DNA of 64,000 nucleotides from contig CBFFRQ010000061.1 in NCBI GenBank assembly GCA_965644315.1, forward strand, positions 62,001 through 126,000, given 5' to 3'. This DNA comes from Caecitellus pseudoparvulus (Eukaryota > Protista > Bigyra: Bicosoecida). How positions within the stretch are numbered: the first letter of the stretch is position 1; the number at the start of each line of letters is the position of its first letter. Below are positions 5,477-19,425 of the stretch, in pieces. A program made the translations under genes and the position numbers. The notes beneath the pieces were generated by a model. That model saw only the letters and a list, made by a program, of their open reading frames with translations, had not been told where the DNA came from and did not search any database.

Positions 5477-7558
5477 ATGGGCAACACTTGCTGCGCGGCT
5501 GGTGGGCAGGGAGCCAGCGATGCAGGCCCGTCCACTGCACCACTGCCTGTGATTGGGTCCAGTAAATTGCGAGAGAAGTATGAGCTGCTGCGTCTCATCG
5601 GGAAGTACGTCGGCGCAACCCGAAGCTAGCCTCGAGGTGTCGCAGCGACACCAGCATTGGAACTGCCCTTCACTACAGGGGCCATTATGGGCTGGTCTAC
5701 GCGGGGAAGGCGAAGGAGACGGGTCAAAATGTTGCCATAAAGATTTTGCAGCGTTCAAAGTCGCGGCCTCACCGGTTAAAGCTCGAGGTCAGCGAAAGCA
5801 GACGCATGTCCCTGCAGCACCAATGACGGCTGAGTGGCCATGGTGCTCAGCTCGTGCGCCACCGCGTTGCGACCCGCCATGGCTTCGCAGGTGGAAATCT
5901 TGAGACTCGTTGGCCAGCACAGGAATGTGGTCAGCCTTCTGGATGCGTTTGAGGTGCGTCACGACCAGGTTTACCCTCGCCGTGCAAATCAACCGTTGGA
6001 GCGTGCACTTTCCTTTGTGCCGCTTTGTTGCAGACTGAGCCAGCCGTTGAGCTGGTTTTCGAACTCATGGAGGGTGGGGAGCTCTTCGAGCGCCTCGTCA
6101 GCAAAGGACCATACAAGTACGCATGCCTTGCCGCGCGGCTGGTGCAGAGCGCCCCACCTCACGCCGTTGTGCCCCTTGTGCACACTGCAGGGAAGCACGA
6201 GCTCTGGTCATCATCAAGCACTTGGCAGACGCATTGGCATTCATCCACAGCAAGGGCGTCGTGCACAGGGACTGTACGGCAGCGCGAGTGCCACTGGCCA
6301 CGCGCTGCAAGCCCGCTGCACCTGCTTCCCGTTCTCCGCAGTGAAACCGGAGAACCTACTGCTCGACTGCGCTGACGAGAAGCGTGCACTGGTGAAACTT
6401 GCCGACTTCGGTCTGTCACATCTCCTCGGGCCAGGCACGACGCACATGACAACCGTCTGCGGCACGTGGGCATACAGCGCTCCAGAGGTGCGCATCAATC
6501 GACAGAAGTACACCCACAAAGTGGACACTTGGTCGCTGGGCGTCATCATGTTTGTCGTGTTATCGGGGTACCGTGAGTGCAGAGTGCAGGCAGCGAACGA
6601 GGTGGCATCCCACACCTCCCGCCCTCCTCCCCTGGCAGACCCCTTCGACCCCGACGGCGTGGCGCCAGAGGAAGAGCTGCAGCGCAACATCAAGTATGGC
6701 AACGTGGACTTTGACGATGATGTGTGGACGGGGGTGTCTGGTGCAGCTCAAGACCTCATTCGCAGGCTGCTCGTGGTGGACCCTCGCAGGCGGTATGACA
6801 CTGGGGACATCCTGGCTCATCCGTGGATCACCAAGAACAGACACTTGTGGGAGGAACCTCCCACGGGCAATCACCCCCCCACAGCGCGCAAGGCTGACAC
6901 AACTCGTGAAGCCCAGGCAGTGGGCCCGAGCTCCATGGGCTCGCCCCCTGCTGGAGAACCTGACTCGTCGGCTGCTGGGGTGGGAGGTGCCTTCATCCTG
7001 TCCCCGACAGCCGACTCTCACGACGAGGCGATCGCTGCTGCAGCCAATGGAGGCGTCGGCACCTTTGCCAAGCACCACAGCAGCAGCTCCAGCGCTGTAG
7101 CTGCTGCAGCTGCGGCCCCTGCAAGTCTTGTGCCGGAGGCGAGCGGCGAGGCTGAGAGGGTTCCTCAAGCCTTCGGCGCGATGCGGCATGCCACGGCTGA
7201 GTCGGGGGCGAGGACATCCAGTGACCTCCCCCAACAATCTGACGCCGATGAGTCTTGTGTTGGCGCTGTCTCCGTGACGCCCTTCATGGTGGCTGAGGCA
7301 CCCACTCACTTGCCCCCAAGACACGCTGCATCCACACAAAGCTCCGCTGCCGGGCAGAAGATAGTGCTGCCTCCACTAGAGTCAGCGAGTACGGGGGCCG
7401 AAAGCAAGCAGACCAGTGCTTTTCAAGGCGTTGGGCCAGTTTTGAGGACCCCAAGTGGACGGGACATTCACTTTGACACGATTCAGAGCACGGCTTCAGC
7501 TCCGAGCCAGGCCCGTTCCCAAGCAGCAGCTGAGGCCAAAGCCAGCCCCCCTGACTGA
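5477..7558 (+). CDS. CAMK-group Ser/Thr protein kinase with N-terminal MGNTCC lipidation motif
   Basis: Spliced: MGNTCC...KYELLRLIGK|GHYGLV...VAIK...E|VEILRLVGQHRNVV...ELMEGGELF...VHRDLKPEN...DFG...TVCGTWAYSAPE...DTWSLGVI...GYHPF. About six short GT-AG introns and a low-complexity C-tail. Confidence 0.92.
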
Positions 7559-7708: not shown

Positions 7709-10700
7709 ATGCAGAAACGCAGTCTTCTAGCTTTGCTGGGCATCACTATCGTGTCAATTAGCTCAGCTCATGTCCCTAAACAGCTCCATGAAGTATCAAT
7801 TCCTAAGCATCATGCTGCGTGCGGGCACTCTGACCCCCAGCTGCAGCGGTGGATGGAGGCCCAAGACGCCCACGTTGTCCCACAGCAGTACGAAGAGCAC
7901 GCCCACGGACGCTCCTTGAGCACCTTCGTCAACGTGCGCAACTCCACCGACACCACTCCCATCCGCATCAAGGTGAGACAGGGCACGTGGGCAGCCCACA
8001 CCATGGCAACTGTGTGGCCGTGTCGCTGGCATGGATGTGCCGCTGCCTGGCGCTGCCTGCTCATGCCAGCCACCCACGCTCACAGGTGCTGTGGACGGTG
8101 GTGGACGGCGGCGGTGTGGAGTACGACTCGCAGAAGGGCTCACTGCGCACGCGGTCATGCTCTCGGGCAGGGCAGGTGATCGACGTGGCGCCAGCGTCAG
8201 GGAGTGACTACGAGGAGTACACGTGCACGCCTGATGATGTTGTGGCGCCGGGGTCGGCTCGGTACACGGTGATGCAGCGGCGCACGGAGTGGGCGGCTGA
8301 GTACTGGGGCTCAGCGCTGACTGTCAAGCGCACAGCGGACCCCATCACCATCAGCGACGGCATTGCAACGAGCTACAACCTCAACGCGAGTGACATGTCT
8401 CACACGGGTGTGGACTTAGTTGTGATCATGATTGCGCGGCCTTCCCCCAACTCCCCCGTGGCTGGCTTCGCCGGGTGCATGCAGCGAGACCAGCACTACC
8501 GCTGCACGGTGGGCTTCTTCAACTGGGTCCCCGCCATCTTTGACGTGGAGAACTCCCTGCAGCCCGACGCCATTGCCAGCGAGCGGCACACGGCAGCCCA
8601 CGAGATGGCGCACATCCTGGGCGCCGTGCTGCTGGGCCCGCACTTCATCGACGCTGACACGGGCACCCCCATCGACTTGAGCACCATCGCGACTGTGGAG
8701 GAGCAGGACGCCACAGACTACCCGAAGCTGGTGACGAAGATCCACTCGCCACGTGTGCTGGCTCATGCTCGAGAGGCGTTTGGGTGCCCCACCCTCGTGG
8801 GTGTGCCGCTGGAAGATGTGCCCCTGGGCAGGGGTGCGCATTGGGAGGCTCGAGTGTTGGGCCCCGAGTTCATGTCGTATGGCAGCTTTGCAGGGGAGGT
8901 GTACGTGTCTGACCTGACGCTGGCGTTCCTGGAGGACACGAACCAGTACATTGCCAACTACACCGTGGCGGGGCGCCTCGTGGAGCCGACGGCGGTGGAG
9001 GCCGACACGGACATCTTCAACTTCCTCGTGTCGTCTGATGCCAGCGAGTACGAGCCGCCGCCGCCGCTGAGTGTGGGGTACTTGCGGTGGGGCCGCGGGG
9101 AGGGGTGTGACTTCGTGAACAAGGGCCCCGTGCACTGGCCTGAGCGGTACGTGTGCACAGAGCACCAGGACTACGGGTGCAGCCCGGACTACCGCGCATC
9201 AGCAGTGTGCATGCTGTCTGTGGGCATTCGAGAGGTGCGGGACTTCACGTGTGGGGATCAGACGGTGACGTCAGGTGGCAGCTTCGACACGTGGCGGACG
9301 ACGTGTCCGCCGGACACGAACGACAACTGCCAGGGTGGTGTGTGTGGTCTGCCCAGCATGTACCAGTACTTTGGCAACACCCAGCCTCGACACATGGCAC
9401 CGCTATCTGCGAAAGACATGTTTCCCACTGTCTCCACCTCTGTTGCGATCACCAGCGACTCGGTTGGTGGGGTTTCGTCGTCCATGGACTACGTGCCAGT
9501 GCGAGTGAAGTACTGGAACTGCATGCATCGCGCTGCAAGTGCTTCCGCCACAAACCGATCAAACGAAGAAGGGGCGTCTATTGATGCGTCACTATTTGGA
9601 AAGGAATCTGACATGGACCTCTTTGGTGGACAGGAAAATTGCCCCGAGTGCCGCTGCTTCCGCTCCTCCCTCATTGAGATCACTAAGGGCATTGACCCCC
9701 GCTTCCCACAGTACGGCCTCTGCTACCGCTCCAACTGCTACCGCAAGGACTACCTCCAAGTGGGCATCCGAGGCGTCACACAGGACAAGACATTCTGGTA
9801 CAAGTGCCCCGCTGGGGGCGGCAAGCTGTACATCGCGGGTTTCACAGGGGCAGTGCATTGCCCACCAGCGCAGGAGTTCTGCAGTCAGAATGAGGTGACG
9901 GGCATCAAGTATGCTGAGACGGATCGCTTGATGGAGTTCATCGTGTGGTTTTCGCTGGCGGGCGTGTTGGTGTTGAGTCTGATCGTGTGCGCGGTGCCAG
10001 CCTGCCGGGAGCCGCTGGTCCGGCGCGCGAAGCTGTGTTCTGGCTTACTTCACCTCGACGCAAACTACAGGATGAACCCTGATGTGCAAGCAGTTTTGAA
10101 GATCCAGGATGATTGGAAAGCTGACCCATGCAATGCTCGGGCACTGAGCGCACTCAGCAACATTATCGGCCTTATCGCCATCACCGTCGGAGGTGCAGTG
10201 ATCTGGTTGTACGCTTCCAGTGGCTTGCCAGCATCGGCAGCAGCGCCTGTCGTTGGCGGCAGCGTTTTTGCTCTGGTTCTCGCAGCTCTCGGCATCGCAT
10301 CAACCCGGGCAAGGTCAAAGGGCGTCTCGTGCACCGTCATTTCATACTTCTTCCTCAGCCTCTTCACCGTCCTGGCGCTGGCCTTCATGGCTCTGCAAAT
10401 CTACACCTCGGATGGGTCGACTTCGCAATACGTGGACAAGAATTGGGACAAGGTCTGTCCCTACTACCACAACCAAGACCCAGGATTTTGCCGAGAGACA
10501 GAGCTCGATCCCCAGCTTCGCGAGGAAGCTGTCGAAGAAGTCTCAAACAGCGTTGAAGGCAATATGCACGCTCTAATGGGAGGCGGGCTAGTCCTGGTGA
10601 TCTTGCTGATTGCTGGAATTCTCATCTCACTGCGCATTATCACCTTCCGTGTGCTTTCTCCGGCCGCATTCACCATTTTGAATTGGGCGACCCTGCTGTG

Positions 10701-11406
10701 CGGCGTGGCGCTCTTCGCAGCCTCCATATGGCTCACGCTTGACTACGGGCAAGGCACGGCAGCGCTGGCTGCATTTACGGTCGCCTGCGTCATGGCTGTG
10801 TTCATGGCCGCAACCTCCATCATTGGGCTGCGAGGTGCCTTCGCGTCCGACCAACGGCTCCTCACGATTCATCTGTGGCTAGTAGCAATCGCTGTGTTGG
10901 GGACAGGGGTTCTGGGCATTGGCATGCTCATGGTGCAAGCAGCGGCAGAGCAGCAAGTGGACAGGATGTCAGATGAAGAAATCGCCGAAGTGACGGGGCA
11001 GTTCAATGACAGCATGTCAAGAAGTGACCTGAAGCTGGCGGTGGGCGCCATGATGAAGACTGTGGCATACTGCTGCTTCGTGCTGTGCAGCGTCAATGCG
11101 CTGCTGGCCTTCTTCAACATCTACTTCTCCAGGCAACTCGGCATCCTTCAAGATGAAATCAAGGCGAAGCTTGCAGCACTCAAGGAAGGCGATGTGTCAT
11201 ACTCTGCACCGTGGGATGCAGAGAGCCGCAAGCGCAGGCTGATGCAAGCCAGACTTGCTGCTCCGCAGACTCAGGACCCTGAGAAGCAAGACGACACTCA
11301 TGACTCCCAGCCCGCGACTGAAAGCGACGAGATTTCCCCAAGCGGCATGGTGGAGCAGCCCGAGACCCCGGGAGGCCAGAGTGCTATCGTGCCGGAGTCA
11401 GCGTAA
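7709..11406 (+). CDS. Leishmanolysin-like (peptidase M8/GP63) zinc metalloprotease with ~9 C-terminal TM helices, copy A
   Basis: Signal peptide MQKRSLLALLG..., propeptide ACGH (Cys switch), HEMAHILG (HExxH), AHWEARV (third His), EFMS (Met-turn), Cys-rich domains, then hydrophobic helices. Intron at about 7973-8085. Confidence 0.9.
7811..10019 (+). repeat. Left arm of ~2.2 kb inverted repeat (pairs with 13058-15263)
   Basis: Direct comparison shows near-identity apart from islands at about 8373-8409 and 9375-9645 and scattered substitutions. Shadow ORFs are also duplicated (e.g. 8416..9165 and 13909..14658). Confidence 0.95.
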
Positions 11407-11480
11407 CGCAAGGGAACGCTGTCAAACCCCTTCAATGCAGCTCTCGCATGCTCTTTGCATTGGGGGCCAAGGTGCTCGCG

Positions 11481-14400
11481 CTATATCTGGGCATGAGGAC
11501 CTTTTCGTCGGATCCGAGGGCGTCGGGCGGCCTGGTGCGGAGTTGCAGGGTTCCCGGCAGACGGGGCTGGAGACGGTGTCGGAGCGGGCGTGGGCGCTTT
11601 CTCGCCCCTCGAGGCTTGAGAGACTGGCACACTTGGGGGGGAAGTTGGAGTACCAGACGAAGCAGCGGCTGGGGGGGCACGAGCTGGTGCATGGGAGTGT
11701 GGGTTGCGCCGCGTGCGGCGTGGGTGAGCGACACCTGACCCGACGGGGTTCACAGGGGCTGCTTTGGCCTCTTGGTCAATCACGCTCTGCCGACGCATGG
11801 CACTCTTGGTGCGGCGCAAGGTGTGGTCCAGCTTTTCCTCTTCGAAAAAGTCCTTGGTTCGGCTCGTGAACATCGCATTCAGCACGGCGACAGCAGTTGA
11901 GCCGATGCCGAGGATGATGATCGCAAAGCTCAGCTTCGTCATCGCGCTCTCGACGGCAGCCTTAAAGCCCTCCCGGGAAAGGCTCTGGTCAAACTGCCCA
12001 GCGATGTTTCCAAGCTCTTCATCTGAATACTGTGCAGTGCGAGGTGTGGGAGTTCAATTGTGTGCGTCGCGAGGTTGTGTTCAATCGGGTGCGCTCAAGC
12101 TTGCCACGTACCGAGTCAACACGCGCTTTGGCATCATCGATCGAAGTTAAGAGCAAGATTGCAGTCAAGAAGCATAGGATCGCGGACAAGGACGTTGTGG
12201 CCAAGTGGATGCGCAGCTTGCAAATGGACTTGGTGAACGCCGCGTTGAGTCCCAAAGCGCCGACGAGCACAAGCACAATGGCAACGGCGATCGCGAAGCC
12301 AAAGGCAGCTGCTGCAGCGCTGCCGCTCCCAAACTCAACCAAGAAGTAGATAGCGACACAGAACAGGACAGCTCCTGTGAAGACTGTGGCCCAATTTAGG
12401 ACCGTGAAAGCTGTGGCGAGAATGACATCCCCATGGATGATCTTGGCGGCCAACACCACGCCGGCCAGCAAGACCCCCATGATGAAGACACCAACGACGC
12501 CAACGATGTAGATTCGAGTCTGAACCTGCTCGGCAACGTCCTCTACAGCTTCAGCACGCAGATCGGGATTCACTTCAGTCTCCGCGCAAAAAGAGCGGTC
12601 GTAGTAAAAGTCGCACACACGGTCCCACTCCTTGTCCACGTACTCCTTTGTTGAAGTGTCAGACACGAAGACCTGCAGCGCCGCAAAGAGCACACCAAGA
12701 AGCGTGAAGAGTGTAATGAAGAAGTATGACAGGATGCTGCAAGACACGCCCTTTGCTGTGTCAGAAGATGAGTAGATGCCGATGCCTCCCAGCACAGCAA
12801 TGCACACGCCGAGGGCACACATGGGCACACCACTCGCAGCGGAGATGGCTGCTTGCGCCATGAGAAGGCCTGCAGCCACAAGAATCCCGATGCCAAGCAT
12901 GGCAATGAATGCGTTGAGTCGGGACAGGTGCTGCCCAAGCTCCGGATCAGGCGCCCAGACGGCTTTATCATCCAAAACCTCGCGCAGTGTCTTATCCTTC
13001 CTCTCGTTGTAGTCGTGGTCAAAGTGCATGACGCCACATTTTGCCTTGAAGAAGAACACCAGCGGCTCTCGGCAGGCTGGCACCGCGCACACGATCAGAC
13101 TCAACACCAACACGCCCGCCAGCGAAAACCACACGATGAACTCCATCAAGCGATCCGTCTCAGCATACTTGATGCCCGTCACCTCATTCTGACTGCAGAA
13201 CTCCTGCGCTGGTGGGCAATGCACTGCCCCTGTGAAACCCGCGATGTACAGCTTGCCGCCCCCAGCGGGGCACTTGTACCAGAATGTCTTGTCCTGTGTG
13301 ACGCCTCGGATGCCCACTTGGAGGTAGTCCTTGCGGTAGCAGTTGGAGCGGTAGCAGAGGCCGTACTGTGGGAAGCGGGGGTTGAGACCTTTCGTGATCT
13401 CGATGAGGGAGGAGCGGAAGCAGCGGCACTCTGGGCAGCGGTCTTGCCCCCCGAAAGCCTCAAACTCAGATTCATCGCCAAACAAGGCCGAGTCAATGGA
13501 AGCGCCTTCCTCTGACGAGCGGTTGCCAGCTGTCACTTGAGTGGAGATATCGGCACAGTTTGCATACGAAACTCGGACAGGTACATAATCAATGGAAGAG
13601 GAAATCCCACCCAGCCCCCCTGCAGTCAACTCTGCACTGAGCTCTGCGTTCGGAAATCTCGCAGAAGCATCCAAACTGGCCAACTTGCCCGAGCCTGGAC
13701 CAAAGTACTGGTACATGCTGGGCAGACCACACACACCACCCTGGCAGTTGTCGTTCGTGTCCGGCGGACACGTCGTCCGCCACGTGTCGAAGCTGCCACC
13801 TGACGTCACCGTCTGATCCCCACACGTGAAGTCCCGCACCTCTCGAATGCCCACAGACAGCATGCACACTGCTGATGCGCGGTAGTCCGGGCTGCACCCG
13901 TAGTCCTGGTGCTCTGTGCACACGTACCGCTCAGGCCAGTGCACGGGGCCCTTGTTCACGAAGTCACACCCCTCCCCGCGGCCCCACCGCAAGTACCCCA
14001 CACTCAGCGGCGGCGGCGGCTCGTACTCGCTGGCATCAGACGACACGAGGAAGTTGAAGATGTCCGTGTCGGCCTCCACCGCCGTCGGCTCCACGAGGCG
14101 CCCCGCCACGGTGTAGTTGGCAATGTACTGATTCGTGTCCTCCAGGAACGCCAGCGTCAGGTCAGACACGTACACCTCCCCTGCAAAGCTGCCATACGAC
14201 ATGAACTCGGGGCCCAACACTCGAGCCTCCCAATGCGCACCCCTGCCCAGGGGCACATCTTCCAGCGGCACACCCACGAGGGTGGGGCACCCAAACGCCT
14301 CTCGAGCATGAGCCAGCACACGTGGCGAGTGGATCTTCGTCACCAGCTTCGGGTAGTCTGTGGCGTCCTGCTCCTCCACAGTCGCGATGGTGCTCAAGTC

Positions 14401-15368
14401 GATGGGGGTGCCCGTGTCAGCGTCGATGAAGTGCGGGCCCAGCAGTACGGCGCCCAGGATGTGCGCCATCTCGTGGGCTGCCGTGTGCCGCTCACTGGCA
14501 ATGGCGTCGGGCTGCAGGGAGTTCTCCACGTCAAAGATGGCGGGGACCCAGTTGAAGAAGCCCACCGTGCAGCGGTAGTGCTGGTCGCGCTGCATGCACC
14601 CTGCGAAGCCAGCCACGGGGGAGTTGGGGGAAGGCCGCGCAATCATGATCACAACTAAGTCCACGTTGTCATGTGTCTGTTCAGAGCTCTCCAAATTAAA
14701 ACTCGTTGCAATGCCGTCGCTGATGGTGATGGGGTCCGCTGTGCGCTTGACAGTCAGCGCTGAGCCCCAGTACTCAGCCGCCCACTCCGTGCGCCGCTGC
14801 ATCACCGTGTACCGAGCCGACCCCGGCGCCACAACATCATCCGGCGTGCACGTGTACTCCTCGTAGTCACTCCCTGACGCTGGCGCCACGTCGATCATCT
14901 GCCCTGCCCGAGAGCATGACCGCGTGCGCAGTGAGCCCTTCTGCGAGTCGTACTCCACACCGCCGCCGTCCACCACCGTCCACAGCACCTGTGAGCGTGG
15001 GTGGCTGGCGTGAGCAGGCAGCGCCAGGCAGCGGCACATCCATGCCAGCGACACGGCCACACAGTTGCCATGGTGTGGGCTGCCCACGTGCCCTGTCTCA
15101 CCTTGATGCGGATGGGAGTGGTGTCGGTGGAGTTGCGCACGTTGACGAAGGTGCTCAAGGAGCGTCCGTGGGCGTGCTCTTCGTACTGCTGTGGGACAAC
15201 GTGGGCGTCTTGGGCCTCCATCCACCGCTGCAGCTGGGGGTCAGAGTGCCCGCACGCAGCATGTGAGCCATGCGATCGCATAAGAGGTGTATCAATGTTC
15301 GGCACGTGAGCTGCACAAACTGCTGCAAGGCCCATGGCGGCCACAAGGCCTAGCGTCGATTGTGGCAT
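11481..15368 (-). CDS. Leishmanolysin-like (peptidase M8) multipass protein, copy B (inverted paralog)
   Basis: Same catalytic motifs as copy A, with its own signal peptide MPQSTLGLVAAMGLAAVCAA. It has the same intron 1 plus a further intron at about 12110-12030 that joins to ORF 11481..11942. Confidence 0.88.
13058..15263 (-). repeat. Right arm of ~2.2 kb inverted repeat (pairs with 7811-10019)
   Basis: Reverse complement of the left arm, with divergent islands at about 14665-14701 and 13432-13699. Confidence 0.95.
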
Positions 15369-16276: not shown

Positions 16277-19200
16277 ATGGAGGAAGAGAGTAAACACGGT
16301 GCACTGGAGCTTGTTGAGCCACCCCCTGTTCCTGGCGGTGCTGCTGCTGAGAAGGAGGAGCAGGCCAGTGGCAGTGACTCGAGCTCAGACGCTGCAGAGG
16401 GGCTTGTTGCAGCGGAAAGTGCTGTCGGCTCGGCAACGTCAAGCTCCTCAAGTGGGAAGAAAGGCAGAAGTTCCTCTGAGTCCCTGGCAAAAATCGACGC
16501 GGGAGCGCCCATCGTTGTGCCAGGCATTGGCGGAGGTGCGGAATCTGCATCGCATGCGTGTCTGGCCCAGAGCGAACGCCAGCATTCTTTCCATGCACAG
16601 GAAGCCTGGAGATCGGCCCAGAAGACCAGGCACGCGTGATGCTCTTTCAACGTCGCATGCGGTTCTTCGTCATGCAGCGTGCGCGCCATCGGTTCTACTT
16701 CGCCCGCCACATGGACAGGTGCGTGCTGCTGCTGTACCAGCCCTTCCCTGCGCGTACTTTGGGTCGGCACCATTCAAATTCTCCCTCGATGACCTGCACA
16801 GGACTCTCGTCTACTGCTTGTTCTTGTTCCTCTATTGCTACTCTCAGGTCGTGACATACCAAAACCGGTAAGTGTGAGGCGGGAGCATGGTGTTTCGGCC
16901 ACTCTCCAACCCTCTCCACCCATGCGCTGTGCAGGCTCTTGTTCTGGTTATCGTACGGGACAATCGACGCAATTTTGGGTGAGGAAATGCCCGACACGGA
17001 GACGCACATCCAGAAGAGCTTTGAAGACATCGGGACGCCCGAGGAGTTCTATCAATGGACCAGCAGCGTGCTCGTTGGGCAACTGTACACGTCTGCGACT
17101 GGATTCTCAGACGCTGATGTTGGGTCAATTTACGGTGTGAATAACATCGTCGGTGCAGTGCGCATCGGGCAAGTGCGGGCGAAGCCACACCCCTGCCGAG
17201 GCCAGACAGCAACCATCAAGTTTGCGCCCAACTCAACGGCTTCCCCCACATGCTACCCTGTGTCCCGAGAGGACTTTGAGCAAAAGGATGAAGATAAAAG
17301 TGACTTTGGTGCCAATGGGGTCACGTGGTCCTGGGCAGGGAACTTTTCTGCAGGCAGTCCAGGAAGACTTCACTGGAGCATTCAGGAGGAGCGGGATCTG
17401 GGCATGCTCGGGCGGTCTGGTGCAAGCGGATTCACGACGTTTGAGGAGGTGTGGTTCCCCTCGCCCGCCTTTCCCGTGATCTTGCCGAACCCCGCTTCGC
17501 CCAATGCGGAAGCCATCGCTACCCGGCGGATCGCTGAGCTGCAACAAGGCGGGTACATCACAGCCGCCACGAGGCTAATCGCAGTGCAGCTCACGCTGGC
17601 CAACCCAGACCTGGACGTGATCATGCCCTTTGTCATGTACATTGAGCTGCCTGGAAGTGGCGGCCTGAACACCGGCTTTAAGTACAATGTGGTGCGACTG
17701 TACAGCATCACATCAAGCACGTCAGACTCAAACGCCGTGATTGAAATGCTCGTCCTGGTGTTCTACTTGTACTTCTTCTTCAAAATCTGCACAGGCATTG
17801 CCCGCAAGGGCCTGGGTTCCTTGCTCAAGGCCAGGAACCTTATCAACGCAGTGTCCATCCTCTTCTACGCTGGTATGTGGTGGGCCCGGTACTCTGCCGA
17901 AGTCACCAGCCCTGCCAAGGACGAGGTGTTCCTGCACACGGATACCTTCTATGCTTTTGAGGCCGCTGCCTCGTACCGCTCGCTCAGCGTCCTCCTGTCT
18001 GCCATCAACTCGTTCCTCGTCGTGTTCACGCTGGCAGACTATCTGTCCGGCTTCGGGGGCCTGCAGCTTGTGACTGGCTCACTGTACAAGTCCCTCCTCC
18101 CATCCGTGTCCTTCTTTGTCGTCTTCATCGTTGTCTTTGTCGGCTTTGCCATCGCCCACATGATGATTTGGGGGCAAGAAATGGAGCAGTTCCGGAATCT
18201 GTCGCAGACTTCGTACACGTTGATGATGTCGTTGCTTGGGGACGTGCCCGTCGAGGAGATGCGCCGCGTGAACCCTAGCATGACGCCTATTCTCGTCATT
18301 GGCTACATTTGCACGCTCACCTTTATTGTTCTCAACATCTTCATCGCCATTGTCACGGAAGCTTACGAGCGTCAGAAGACAGAGATGGAGGAGGGCATCC
18401 AGGCAAACCTCCTGGCTGACTTGTCCGCGTACTTGGTAGGCAAGTGCCGTGCCCTTCTTGGGGAAAGCGCAGAGGCCACACTGCGGTGGCTTTTGTCTGG
18501 GTGCACCGGCGTGGGGCGGTCCCTCACCTCTGGAAACCCGCAATCGCTGAAGCGGAGGATGGCCGCAGTGGGCATCGAGATTTCGGATCGGGCTGCAGAT
18601 CGCGCCTTCTTCACGGTGGAGGGCAGCGAGTACGCCGAGACCAAGGCGTTCACATCCATGGGTTTGTGTGCAGGCCAAGTCGGACAGCTGCAGAAGGCAA
18701 CAGCGGCCATCAAGGCACCCTTCGAAGCCATGCGACAGGAGGCTCGCCGGCGGGCTGCTTCCTTTGCCCGTGGTAATCCGATGGTGATGGCGAAGGCGGG
18801 ATCCCCACCGGCAGCGACCACTTCCACAGAAAGCCCCCCTCCAGCACCTTCCAATTGCTCGTCGGCCATGCGCACACTGAGCGCGTCTGAGCAGCCGTTG
18901 CAAACTTGCTGTTCCGCACGCCGAACCTGCTGCCAGCAGTTCTGCGATAACCCTACTGGCAGTTCGTGGGCCTGCCTGAAGTTGGTCATGGTGCGCCTAA
19001 CGTTGGTTCTCACAAACAGCTTGTACATTCACGTGTACAAGGTTTCCGCCGACAACCTGCGCAAATACGCACAGGACAGCCCGGACGGCAACCGCTTGAA
19101 GGAGGCGTTGTTCAAGTGCCTGCGGCAAGAGCGGGATGCATCCAAGGCCATGGCCCGCATCCTTCAGGCACGCGCAGAGCAAGTTTTGAGCGGAAGCGGG

Positions 19201-19425
19201 CCTCGTGCCCAGCAAGAACAAGCGAAGCTTGCTGCTGCATTGACCGCGCTGGGCGAGCAAACGCCACAATCCCATCGCCTGGCCGCCGCGTTGCAAGGTG
19301 CAGCAGAAGGCGCTGCGACACTCCTTGCCGAGAGATCGACCGAAGACATTCAAAAGGCGCTCAGCCTCTTGAAGCTGGGCGGCACCTTCTCGTTGGATTC
19401 CTCACAAGGGCCGCTTCCCGAGTGA
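16277..19425 (+). CDS. Polycystin-2 (PKD2/TRPP)-like cation channel
   Basis: TM1 (LVYCLFLFLY), then a TOP domain (FEDIGTPEEFYQW, NNIVGAVRIGQVR, YITAATRLIAVQLTLANPDLD), further TMs, pore FRNLSQTSYTLMMSLLGD and S6 FIVLNIFIAIVTEAY. The 5' introns lie at about 16540-16600, 16720-? and 16868-16934. The C-terminal extent is uncertain. Confidence 0.85.

Follow-up and report, generated by a model that had tools for sequence, protein, structure and literature searches.

The DNA considered here is a stretch of 64,000 nucleotides (nt) from the bicosoecid protist Caecitellus pseudoparvulus (contig CBFFRQ010000061.1, 62,001-126,000, forward strand). The whole of this stretch is called the window, and coordinates are positions within it unless the contig is named. 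The window contains two genes, here called A and B, which a first-pass annotation of the sequence had described as two M8 protease genes facing one another tail-to-tail. Both genes are intact, they converge on stop codons that are 74 nt apart, and each encodes a fusion of a leishmanolysin (M8) protease with a tetraspanin. The 5′ halves of the two genes form inverted arms, in which near-identical blocks are interrupted by two divergent islands (V1 and V2), and the spacer between the arms comprises the divergent 3′ halves. The duplication that produced this pair is old, gene conversion between the arms has been recent and is ongoing, the types of island are conserved, and the converted blocks are GC-biased.

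The exons were searched for domains one by one, each separately. The Peptidase_M8 domain (PF01457) was found in both genes with scores of 103-104 bits (cutoff 21; E about 1e-29), in agreement with the description of a tail-to-tail pair of M8 proteases. The leishmanolysin structure 1LML was matched with an E value of 5e-8, with the HEMAH motif, the downstream third His and the Met-turn aligned. The Tetraspanin domain (PF00335) scored 39.0 bits in gene A and 33.6 bits in gene B (cutoff 32.1), with two stretches in each, and nine hydrophobic helices are readable in the translation. In the translated loop after the fourth helix of gene A there is no CCG motif, only two separated Cys residues; thus, the tail of A is tetraspanin-like rather than canonical. 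The junction of intron 1 is identical in an NCBI gene model on a related contig. Dozens of proteins from protists and metagenomes (EukProt, MMETSP, Cymbomonas and others) have the same combination of Peptidase_M8 with Tetraspanin, and a literature search found no report of an M8-tetraspanin fusion. In animals, the TspanC8 tetraspanins are partners of ADAM10, and the fusion of a protease to a tetraspanin recalls that partnership.

A repeat search found three inverted pairs (7811-8372/14702-15263, 8410-9374/13700-14664 and 9553-10019/13058-13524), which are the only long repeats in the 64-kb window. The blocks of identity are 562, 965 and 320 nt long (Table 1), and within them the two copies differ by a total of nine bases and one indel. 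The homogenised stretch begins just 3′ of the signal peptide, at the HAACGH motif (7811 in A), and stops a few codons beyond the first transmembrane helix (TM1); block 2 encodes the catalytic HExxH motif, the third His and the Met-turn. On its right side V2 ends in a gradient (9553-9699), and past 10019, in the membrane tails, the copies are 42-52% identical. The first-pass annotation had described the 5′ halves (7811-10019 and 13058-15263) as near-identical inverted arms: the near-identity holds, but the halves are not uniform, being composed of three blocks and two divergent islands. It had also placed the difference between the two copies of intron 1 at about one base, and had noted that the signal peptides and the C-terminal membrane regions are diverged. 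Both observations stand: intron 1 differs at 1 of 113 positions (7973-8085 compared with 15101-14989), the signal peptides differ, and the tails have the low identity just given.

Table 1. Genes, identity blocks and divergent islands of the locus (positions within the window)
Feature	Position	Strand	Inverted partner	Length or differences	Content
Gene A exon 1	7709-7972	+			own signal peptide, then HAACGH region
Gene A intron 1	7973-8085	+		113 nt	GT..AG
Gene A exon 2	8086-11406	+			M8 ectodomain with HEMAH, TM1, two tetraspanin-like 4-TM units, TAA stop
Gap between convergent stop codons	11407-11480	.		74 nt	
Gene B exon 3	11481-12029	-			last TM helix, Pro/Ala-rich tail, TAG stop
Gene B intron 2	12030-12111	-		82 nt	GT..AG; absent from A
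Gene B exon 2	12112-14988	-			ectodomain as in A except V1 and V2; diverged tetraspanin-like tail
Gene B intron 1	14989-15101	-		113 nt	one difference from intron 1 of A
Gene B exon 1	15102-15368	-			own signal peptide, differing from that of A
Block 1	7811-8372		14702-15263	3/562 mismatches (base count)	
Island V1	8373-8409		14665-14701	37 nt, 25/37 mismatches	
Block 2	8410-9374		13700-14664	5/964 mismatches plus one indel at 9374 (base count)	
Island V2	about 9375-9699		about 13378-13699	about 325 nt, 58% identical	part of M8 C-terminal domain
Block 3	9700-10019		13058-13377	1/320 mismatches (base count)	Cys-rich juxtamembrane segment and TM1

The contrast between blocks and islands is also seen at synonymous sites. 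In the three blocks, synonymous divergence (dS) between A and B is 0.026-0.028, whereas V2 gives a value of 3.4 and the tails values of 1.5-5; it is not computable in V1, and it is saturated in V2 and the tails. As the intron differs at a single position in 113, selection at the level of the protein cannot explain the identity of the arms. Maximum likelihood trees with 14 homologues conflict between the ectodomain and tail segments of this one gene pair: the path from A to B is 0.02 for the former and 1.64 for the latter. In the tail tree A and B lie in an unresolved group together with genes from other species, and their distance from one another is about the same as their distance from the genes of other species.

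The genome holds two further fusion-type paralogs and several weaker matches to the M8 domain. One of the two, paralog C (contig positions 58604-61596, + strand), lies about 8 kb upstream of gene A, just before the start of the window, and has 55% protein identity; the other is on a different contig. No further copies of the arms or of V2 were found in the assembly. At the syntenic locus (polycystin channel, M8 gene, kinase) of the relatives P0002 and P0003, which are at 44-48% identity, there is one M8 gene only, in the orientation of B; the genes of two further relatives, P0004 and P0005, are also single, at a different locus. Conservation of the tail-to-tail pair in distant relatives was considered and rejected, as the syntenic locus and two further loci hold single genes. 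Thus, the inverted copy arose within this lineage, long ago. The kinase and polycystin-channel neighbourhood of the M8 genes (window 5834-7558 and 16939-19425) is itself conserved in the 44-48%-identity relatives with one M8 gene.

Three public contigs, here called K, Z1 and Z2, are 96.5-98% identical to the locus and allow the pair to be followed across more closely related lineages. K (L014) is CAJNDU010010017.1 in assembly GCA_905221625.1, which is labelled Symbiodinium sp. KB8; the scaffolds Z1 and Z2 (L012, L015) come from two metagenomes that belong to a single project. The K contig, together with its protein CAE7354384.1, is 97% identical over 7.8 kb to the 30.6-Mb protist genome, and it is probably a culture contaminant related to this protist, not dinoflagellate DNA. 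A scan of JGI metagenomes found no close relatives. The convergent tails are reproduced in K, Z1 and Z2, and K and Z jointly hold both forms of each variable part (V1A and V1B, V2A and V2B, tail A and tail B), each 93-100% identical to the corresponding type in the reference, i.e., the Caecitellus locus. Therefore, the duplication is older than the divergence of the three lineages, and so are both islands. In K and Z, the contigs, which were built from short reads, start or stop exactly at arm boundaries, as they would if the arms had been collapsed as repeats in those assemblies also, and a protein search restricted to the tail of B found no contig joining an arm to tail B.

Two side observations concern the same contigs. 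Positions 1-438 of the K scaffold consist of 338 nt from the end of B's block 2 and V2B, followed by 100 N, before the flank of A; this order and orientation are unlike those of the reference, and a scaffolding error caused by the repeat may explain them. The 74-nt stretch between the stop codons is identical in K and differs by one base in Z. Because the stop codons are so close together, the 3′ untranslated regions of the two genes must overlap or be very short; read-through of A or B would yield an RNA that could fold back on its 5′ half in a hairpin of 2.2 kb.

Comparison with K and Z shows that the arms have been exchanging sequence since these lineages separated. In the blocks, the reference carries 12 private substitutions (relative to K and Z) in both arms and 6 in one arm only. 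A private substitution common to both arms requires conversion after the lineage split. In the 151 nt where the two K copies overlap, two K-private changes are likewise common to both copies. Lineage-private divergence is 2.98% in the arms versus 4.25% in the spacer (p 0.025), and the same pattern of divergence and GC content in arms versus spacer has been described for the human Y palindrome P6 (PMC3723533).

Base composition bears the mark of the same process. The GC content of third codon positions (GC3) is 0.80-0.83 in the blocks, 0.55-0.62 in V2, 0.63-0.67 in the tails and 0.46 in V1B; no rise in GC3 was found in the homologous segments of the single-copy relatives P0003 and P0005. Changes from strong to weak bases (S>W) per S site amount to 0.019 in the arms versus 0.042 in the spacer, and the arms have W>S and S>W changes in a ratio of 23:23, against 37:74 for the spacer, which is a trend only (p 0.07).

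The islands have a different history from the blocks that surround them. Between lineages, all segments are under purifying selection, with ratios of nonsynonymous to synonymous divergence (dN/dS) of 0-0.19, including 0.04 for V2A and 0.00 for V2B. Because both types of each island recur across lineages under strong purifying selection (dN/dS 0-0.04), they are two stable isoforms, not the output of a diversity generator; both forms are functional, as opposed to cassettes in rapid evolution. V1 is situated immediately ahead of the conserved DLVVIM(I/T)ARP strand and is within the most variable 2% of 13-residue ectodomain windows across the family, i.e., it is a hypervariable loop. For V2, variability across the family is unexceptional, and the conserved MDY(C/V)PV core of the M8 C-terminal domain lies within it. 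Three old dimorphic sites (8232, 8472 and 8580) flank V1, and their position is in keeping with selection against conversion tracts extending over the island.

Several smaller observations were made on V2. The synonymous divergence of V2A between the reference and K is 0.30, versus 0.09 for the arms and 0.13 for the tails; for V2B it is 0.04. In K, one cluster of three sites within V2A (9472-9480) matches the B type. The import of V2A from paralog C was considered and is not convincing, as the similarity is limited to patches of 48-70 nt, and over V2 as a whole the three genes A, B and C lie at roughly equal distances from one another. These patches are 85-87% identical to V2A, and thereby nearer to it than V2B is; they may be old micro-conversions.

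The explanation we favour, with a probability of roughly 0.8, is that an old inverted duplication has had its ectodomain-coding blocks kept alike by ongoing gene conversion from arm to arm. A leishmanolysin-tetraspanin fusion gene would have been duplicated long ago, with the copy inverted to lie tail-to-tail with the original. The blocks coding for the ectodomain and the first TM helix would then have been homogenised repeatedly by gene conversion through ordinary homologous recombination, as in the arms of palindromes, whereas V1, V2, the signal peptides and the multi-pass membrane tails would have escaped conversion and kept their ancient, paralog-specific sequence. The islands probably persist because selection removes those conversions that erase paralog-specific function, and heterology, by stopping conversion tracts, may help. 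The result would be two proteases that have a common catalytic head and differ in their V1 and V2 surfaces, leaders and membrane modules. Rare inversions by crossover would be expected as a by-product, not as the purpose of the arrangement. Concerted evolution had been named as an alternative in the first-pass annotation, and it is strongly supported by the contrast in dS, the conflicting trees, the private substitutions common to both arms and GC3.

Four points weigh against this explanation. First, that selection accounts for the survival of a 37-nt island between converted blocks of 562 and 965 nt is something that we infer. Second, the contrast in W>S and S>W changes is only a trend and is confounded by the different coding constraints of arms and spacer. 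Third, the short-read arms of K and Z may mix both paralogs, which weakens the polarisation of changes at some sites. Fourth, the identity of the reference arms is that of the assembled sequence.

Of the other explanations, the one that survives best is that of a functional flip-flop, in which crossovers between the blocks would invert the spacer often, thereby diversifying the combinations of leader, V1, V2 and tail carried by the protease. The first-pass annotation had pointed out that crossover between the arms would give intact, in-frame chimeric genes, and by geometry this is true of both products and of any block; in addition, homologous recombination would have ample substrate in stretches of 253-431 nt without a single difference. 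The combinations of cassettes also vary between assemblies: V1A-V2A-tailA in the reference, V1B-V2A-tailA in K, V1A-V2B-tailA in Z1 and V1B-V2B-tailA in Z2. The link between V2 and the tail spans 313 nt, perhaps resolvable by read pairs, and it is V2B-tailA in both Z1 and Z2 but V2A-tailA in the reference and K; as support for inversion, this linkage in Z is a hint, no more.

However, the assembly graph is the same whether the locus is inverted or not, and contigs from short reads cannot separate the two states. Z1 and Z2 are 99% identical and differ only in the V1 that they carry, so the choice of path at V1 is arbitrary; the reading of the Z scaffold V1A-V2B-tailA as a real recombinant was withdrawn for this reason, and because the contigs end at arm boundaries. 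The differences in cassettes among the assemblies are explained as well by arbitrary paths through collapsed repeats, and are therefore not evidence of inversion. In the assembly of the reference only one orientation is present, and no contig with the alternative orientation was found. A Pfam search of nine of the long open reading frames (at least 220 amino acids) between 1 and 27.7 kb identified a kinase, a cap methyltransferase, a polycystin channel and ankyrin proteins and, as the first-pass annotation had noted of the window, no recombinase, although short or spliced genes could escape such a search. Short, specific inverted recombination sites were not found either, the only inverted repeats being the homologous coding blocks of 320-965 nt. 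Each island has two forms only, under strong purifying selection, and in the best-studied palindrome, P6 of the human Y, conversions outnumber inversions by 56 to 3 (PMC3723533). The idea of a shufflon-like diversifying system has no support: no recombinase was found among the reading frames searched, the arms are long coding blocks, and each island has two conserved forms, the opposite of what a generator of diversity would give. We regard a functional flip-flop as unlikely. Slightly less probable again is a eukaryotic switch that works without a recombinase, in which homologous crossovers in the three blocks would invert the 3-kb spacer at an appreciable rate, clonal populations would carry several combinations and the V2B-tailA of Z would be a real inversion product.

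A recent partial duplication of the 5′ half, after which V1, V2 and the tails would have diverged very rapidly by adaptation, would account for the near-identity of the arms and would suit the position of V1 in a loop that is hypervariable across the family. It is nevertheless very improbable, as the synonymous sites of V2 and the tail are saturated, the types of V1, V2 and tail all have orthologues in the other lineages that are 97-100% identical, with dN/dS of at most 0.19, and the reference-private substitutions in both arms require conversion after the lineages split. Just as improbable is an artefact of assembly or polishing, in which mis-mapped reads equalised the arms or the palindrome was joined chimerically: polishing can readily collapse inverted repeats that are nearly identical, but the convergent tails, both types of island and the arm boundaries recur in three independent public assemblies, nine mismatches and sharp islands survive in the reference arms, and the shift in GC3 needs a long evolutionary time.

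The locus is a further example of a known process, and no new mechanism is indicated. Its value lies in being a compact case, in which conversion and selection have split a gene pair into a common catalytic head on the one hand and private islands, leader and membrane module on the other, with island boundaries that are conserved across lineages. It could serve as a tractable model for how short a heterology (here 37 nt) resists conversion, for the ratio of conversion to crossover in a protist, and for the contribution of V1, V2 and the tetraspanin-like tails to the choice of substrate or partner.

The closest known situation is that of the palindromes of sex chromosomes (human Y P1-P8, and X; PMC3723533, PMC8981503). 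There too, inverted arms that are more than 99% identical surround a unique spacer, intrachromosomal conversion maintains their identity, the arms diverge less between lineages than the spacer does, the arms have higher GC and fewer S>W changes, and inversion is a possible but infrequent event. The arms described here differ in being about 50 times shorter (2.2 kb) and in lying inside genes instead of containing whole genes; moreover, they are interrupted by two conversion-resistant islands, and the spacer is made up of the divergent 3′ halves of both genes. The GP63 arrays of Leishmania (PMC6367770) belong to the same protease family and likewise have a homogenised core with differing C-terminal ends and discrete variable motifs, a variation that has been attributed to intragenic recombination or to mosaic (fragmental) gene conversion. 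In Leishmania, however, there are many tandem, direct copies and many variants, for which a role in immune evasion has been proposed, and the proteins have glycosylphosphatidylinositol anchors or short tails; here, there are two inverted copies, two stable variants of each island, purifying selection and tetraspanin-like tails.

Bacterial shufflons and invertible switches (Rci, Hin/Gin) resemble the locus in that inverted repeats flank a segment whose inversion would exchange C-terminal coding parts of a surface protein. They depend on a dedicated site-specific recombinase and on short, specific sites, and neither of these defining features was found here, the recombinase having been sought in the long reading frames just described. 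The human genes RHD and RHCE are paralogous genes for multi-pass membrane proteins, with their 3′ ends facing, in which gene conversion gives rise to hybrid genes; about 30 kb and an intervening gene separate the two, and the outcome of conversion is polymorphic hybrid alleles. Genes A and B are similarly a tail-to-tail pair in opposite orientation that exchanges segments, but what they form is a stable mosaic of blocks and islands.

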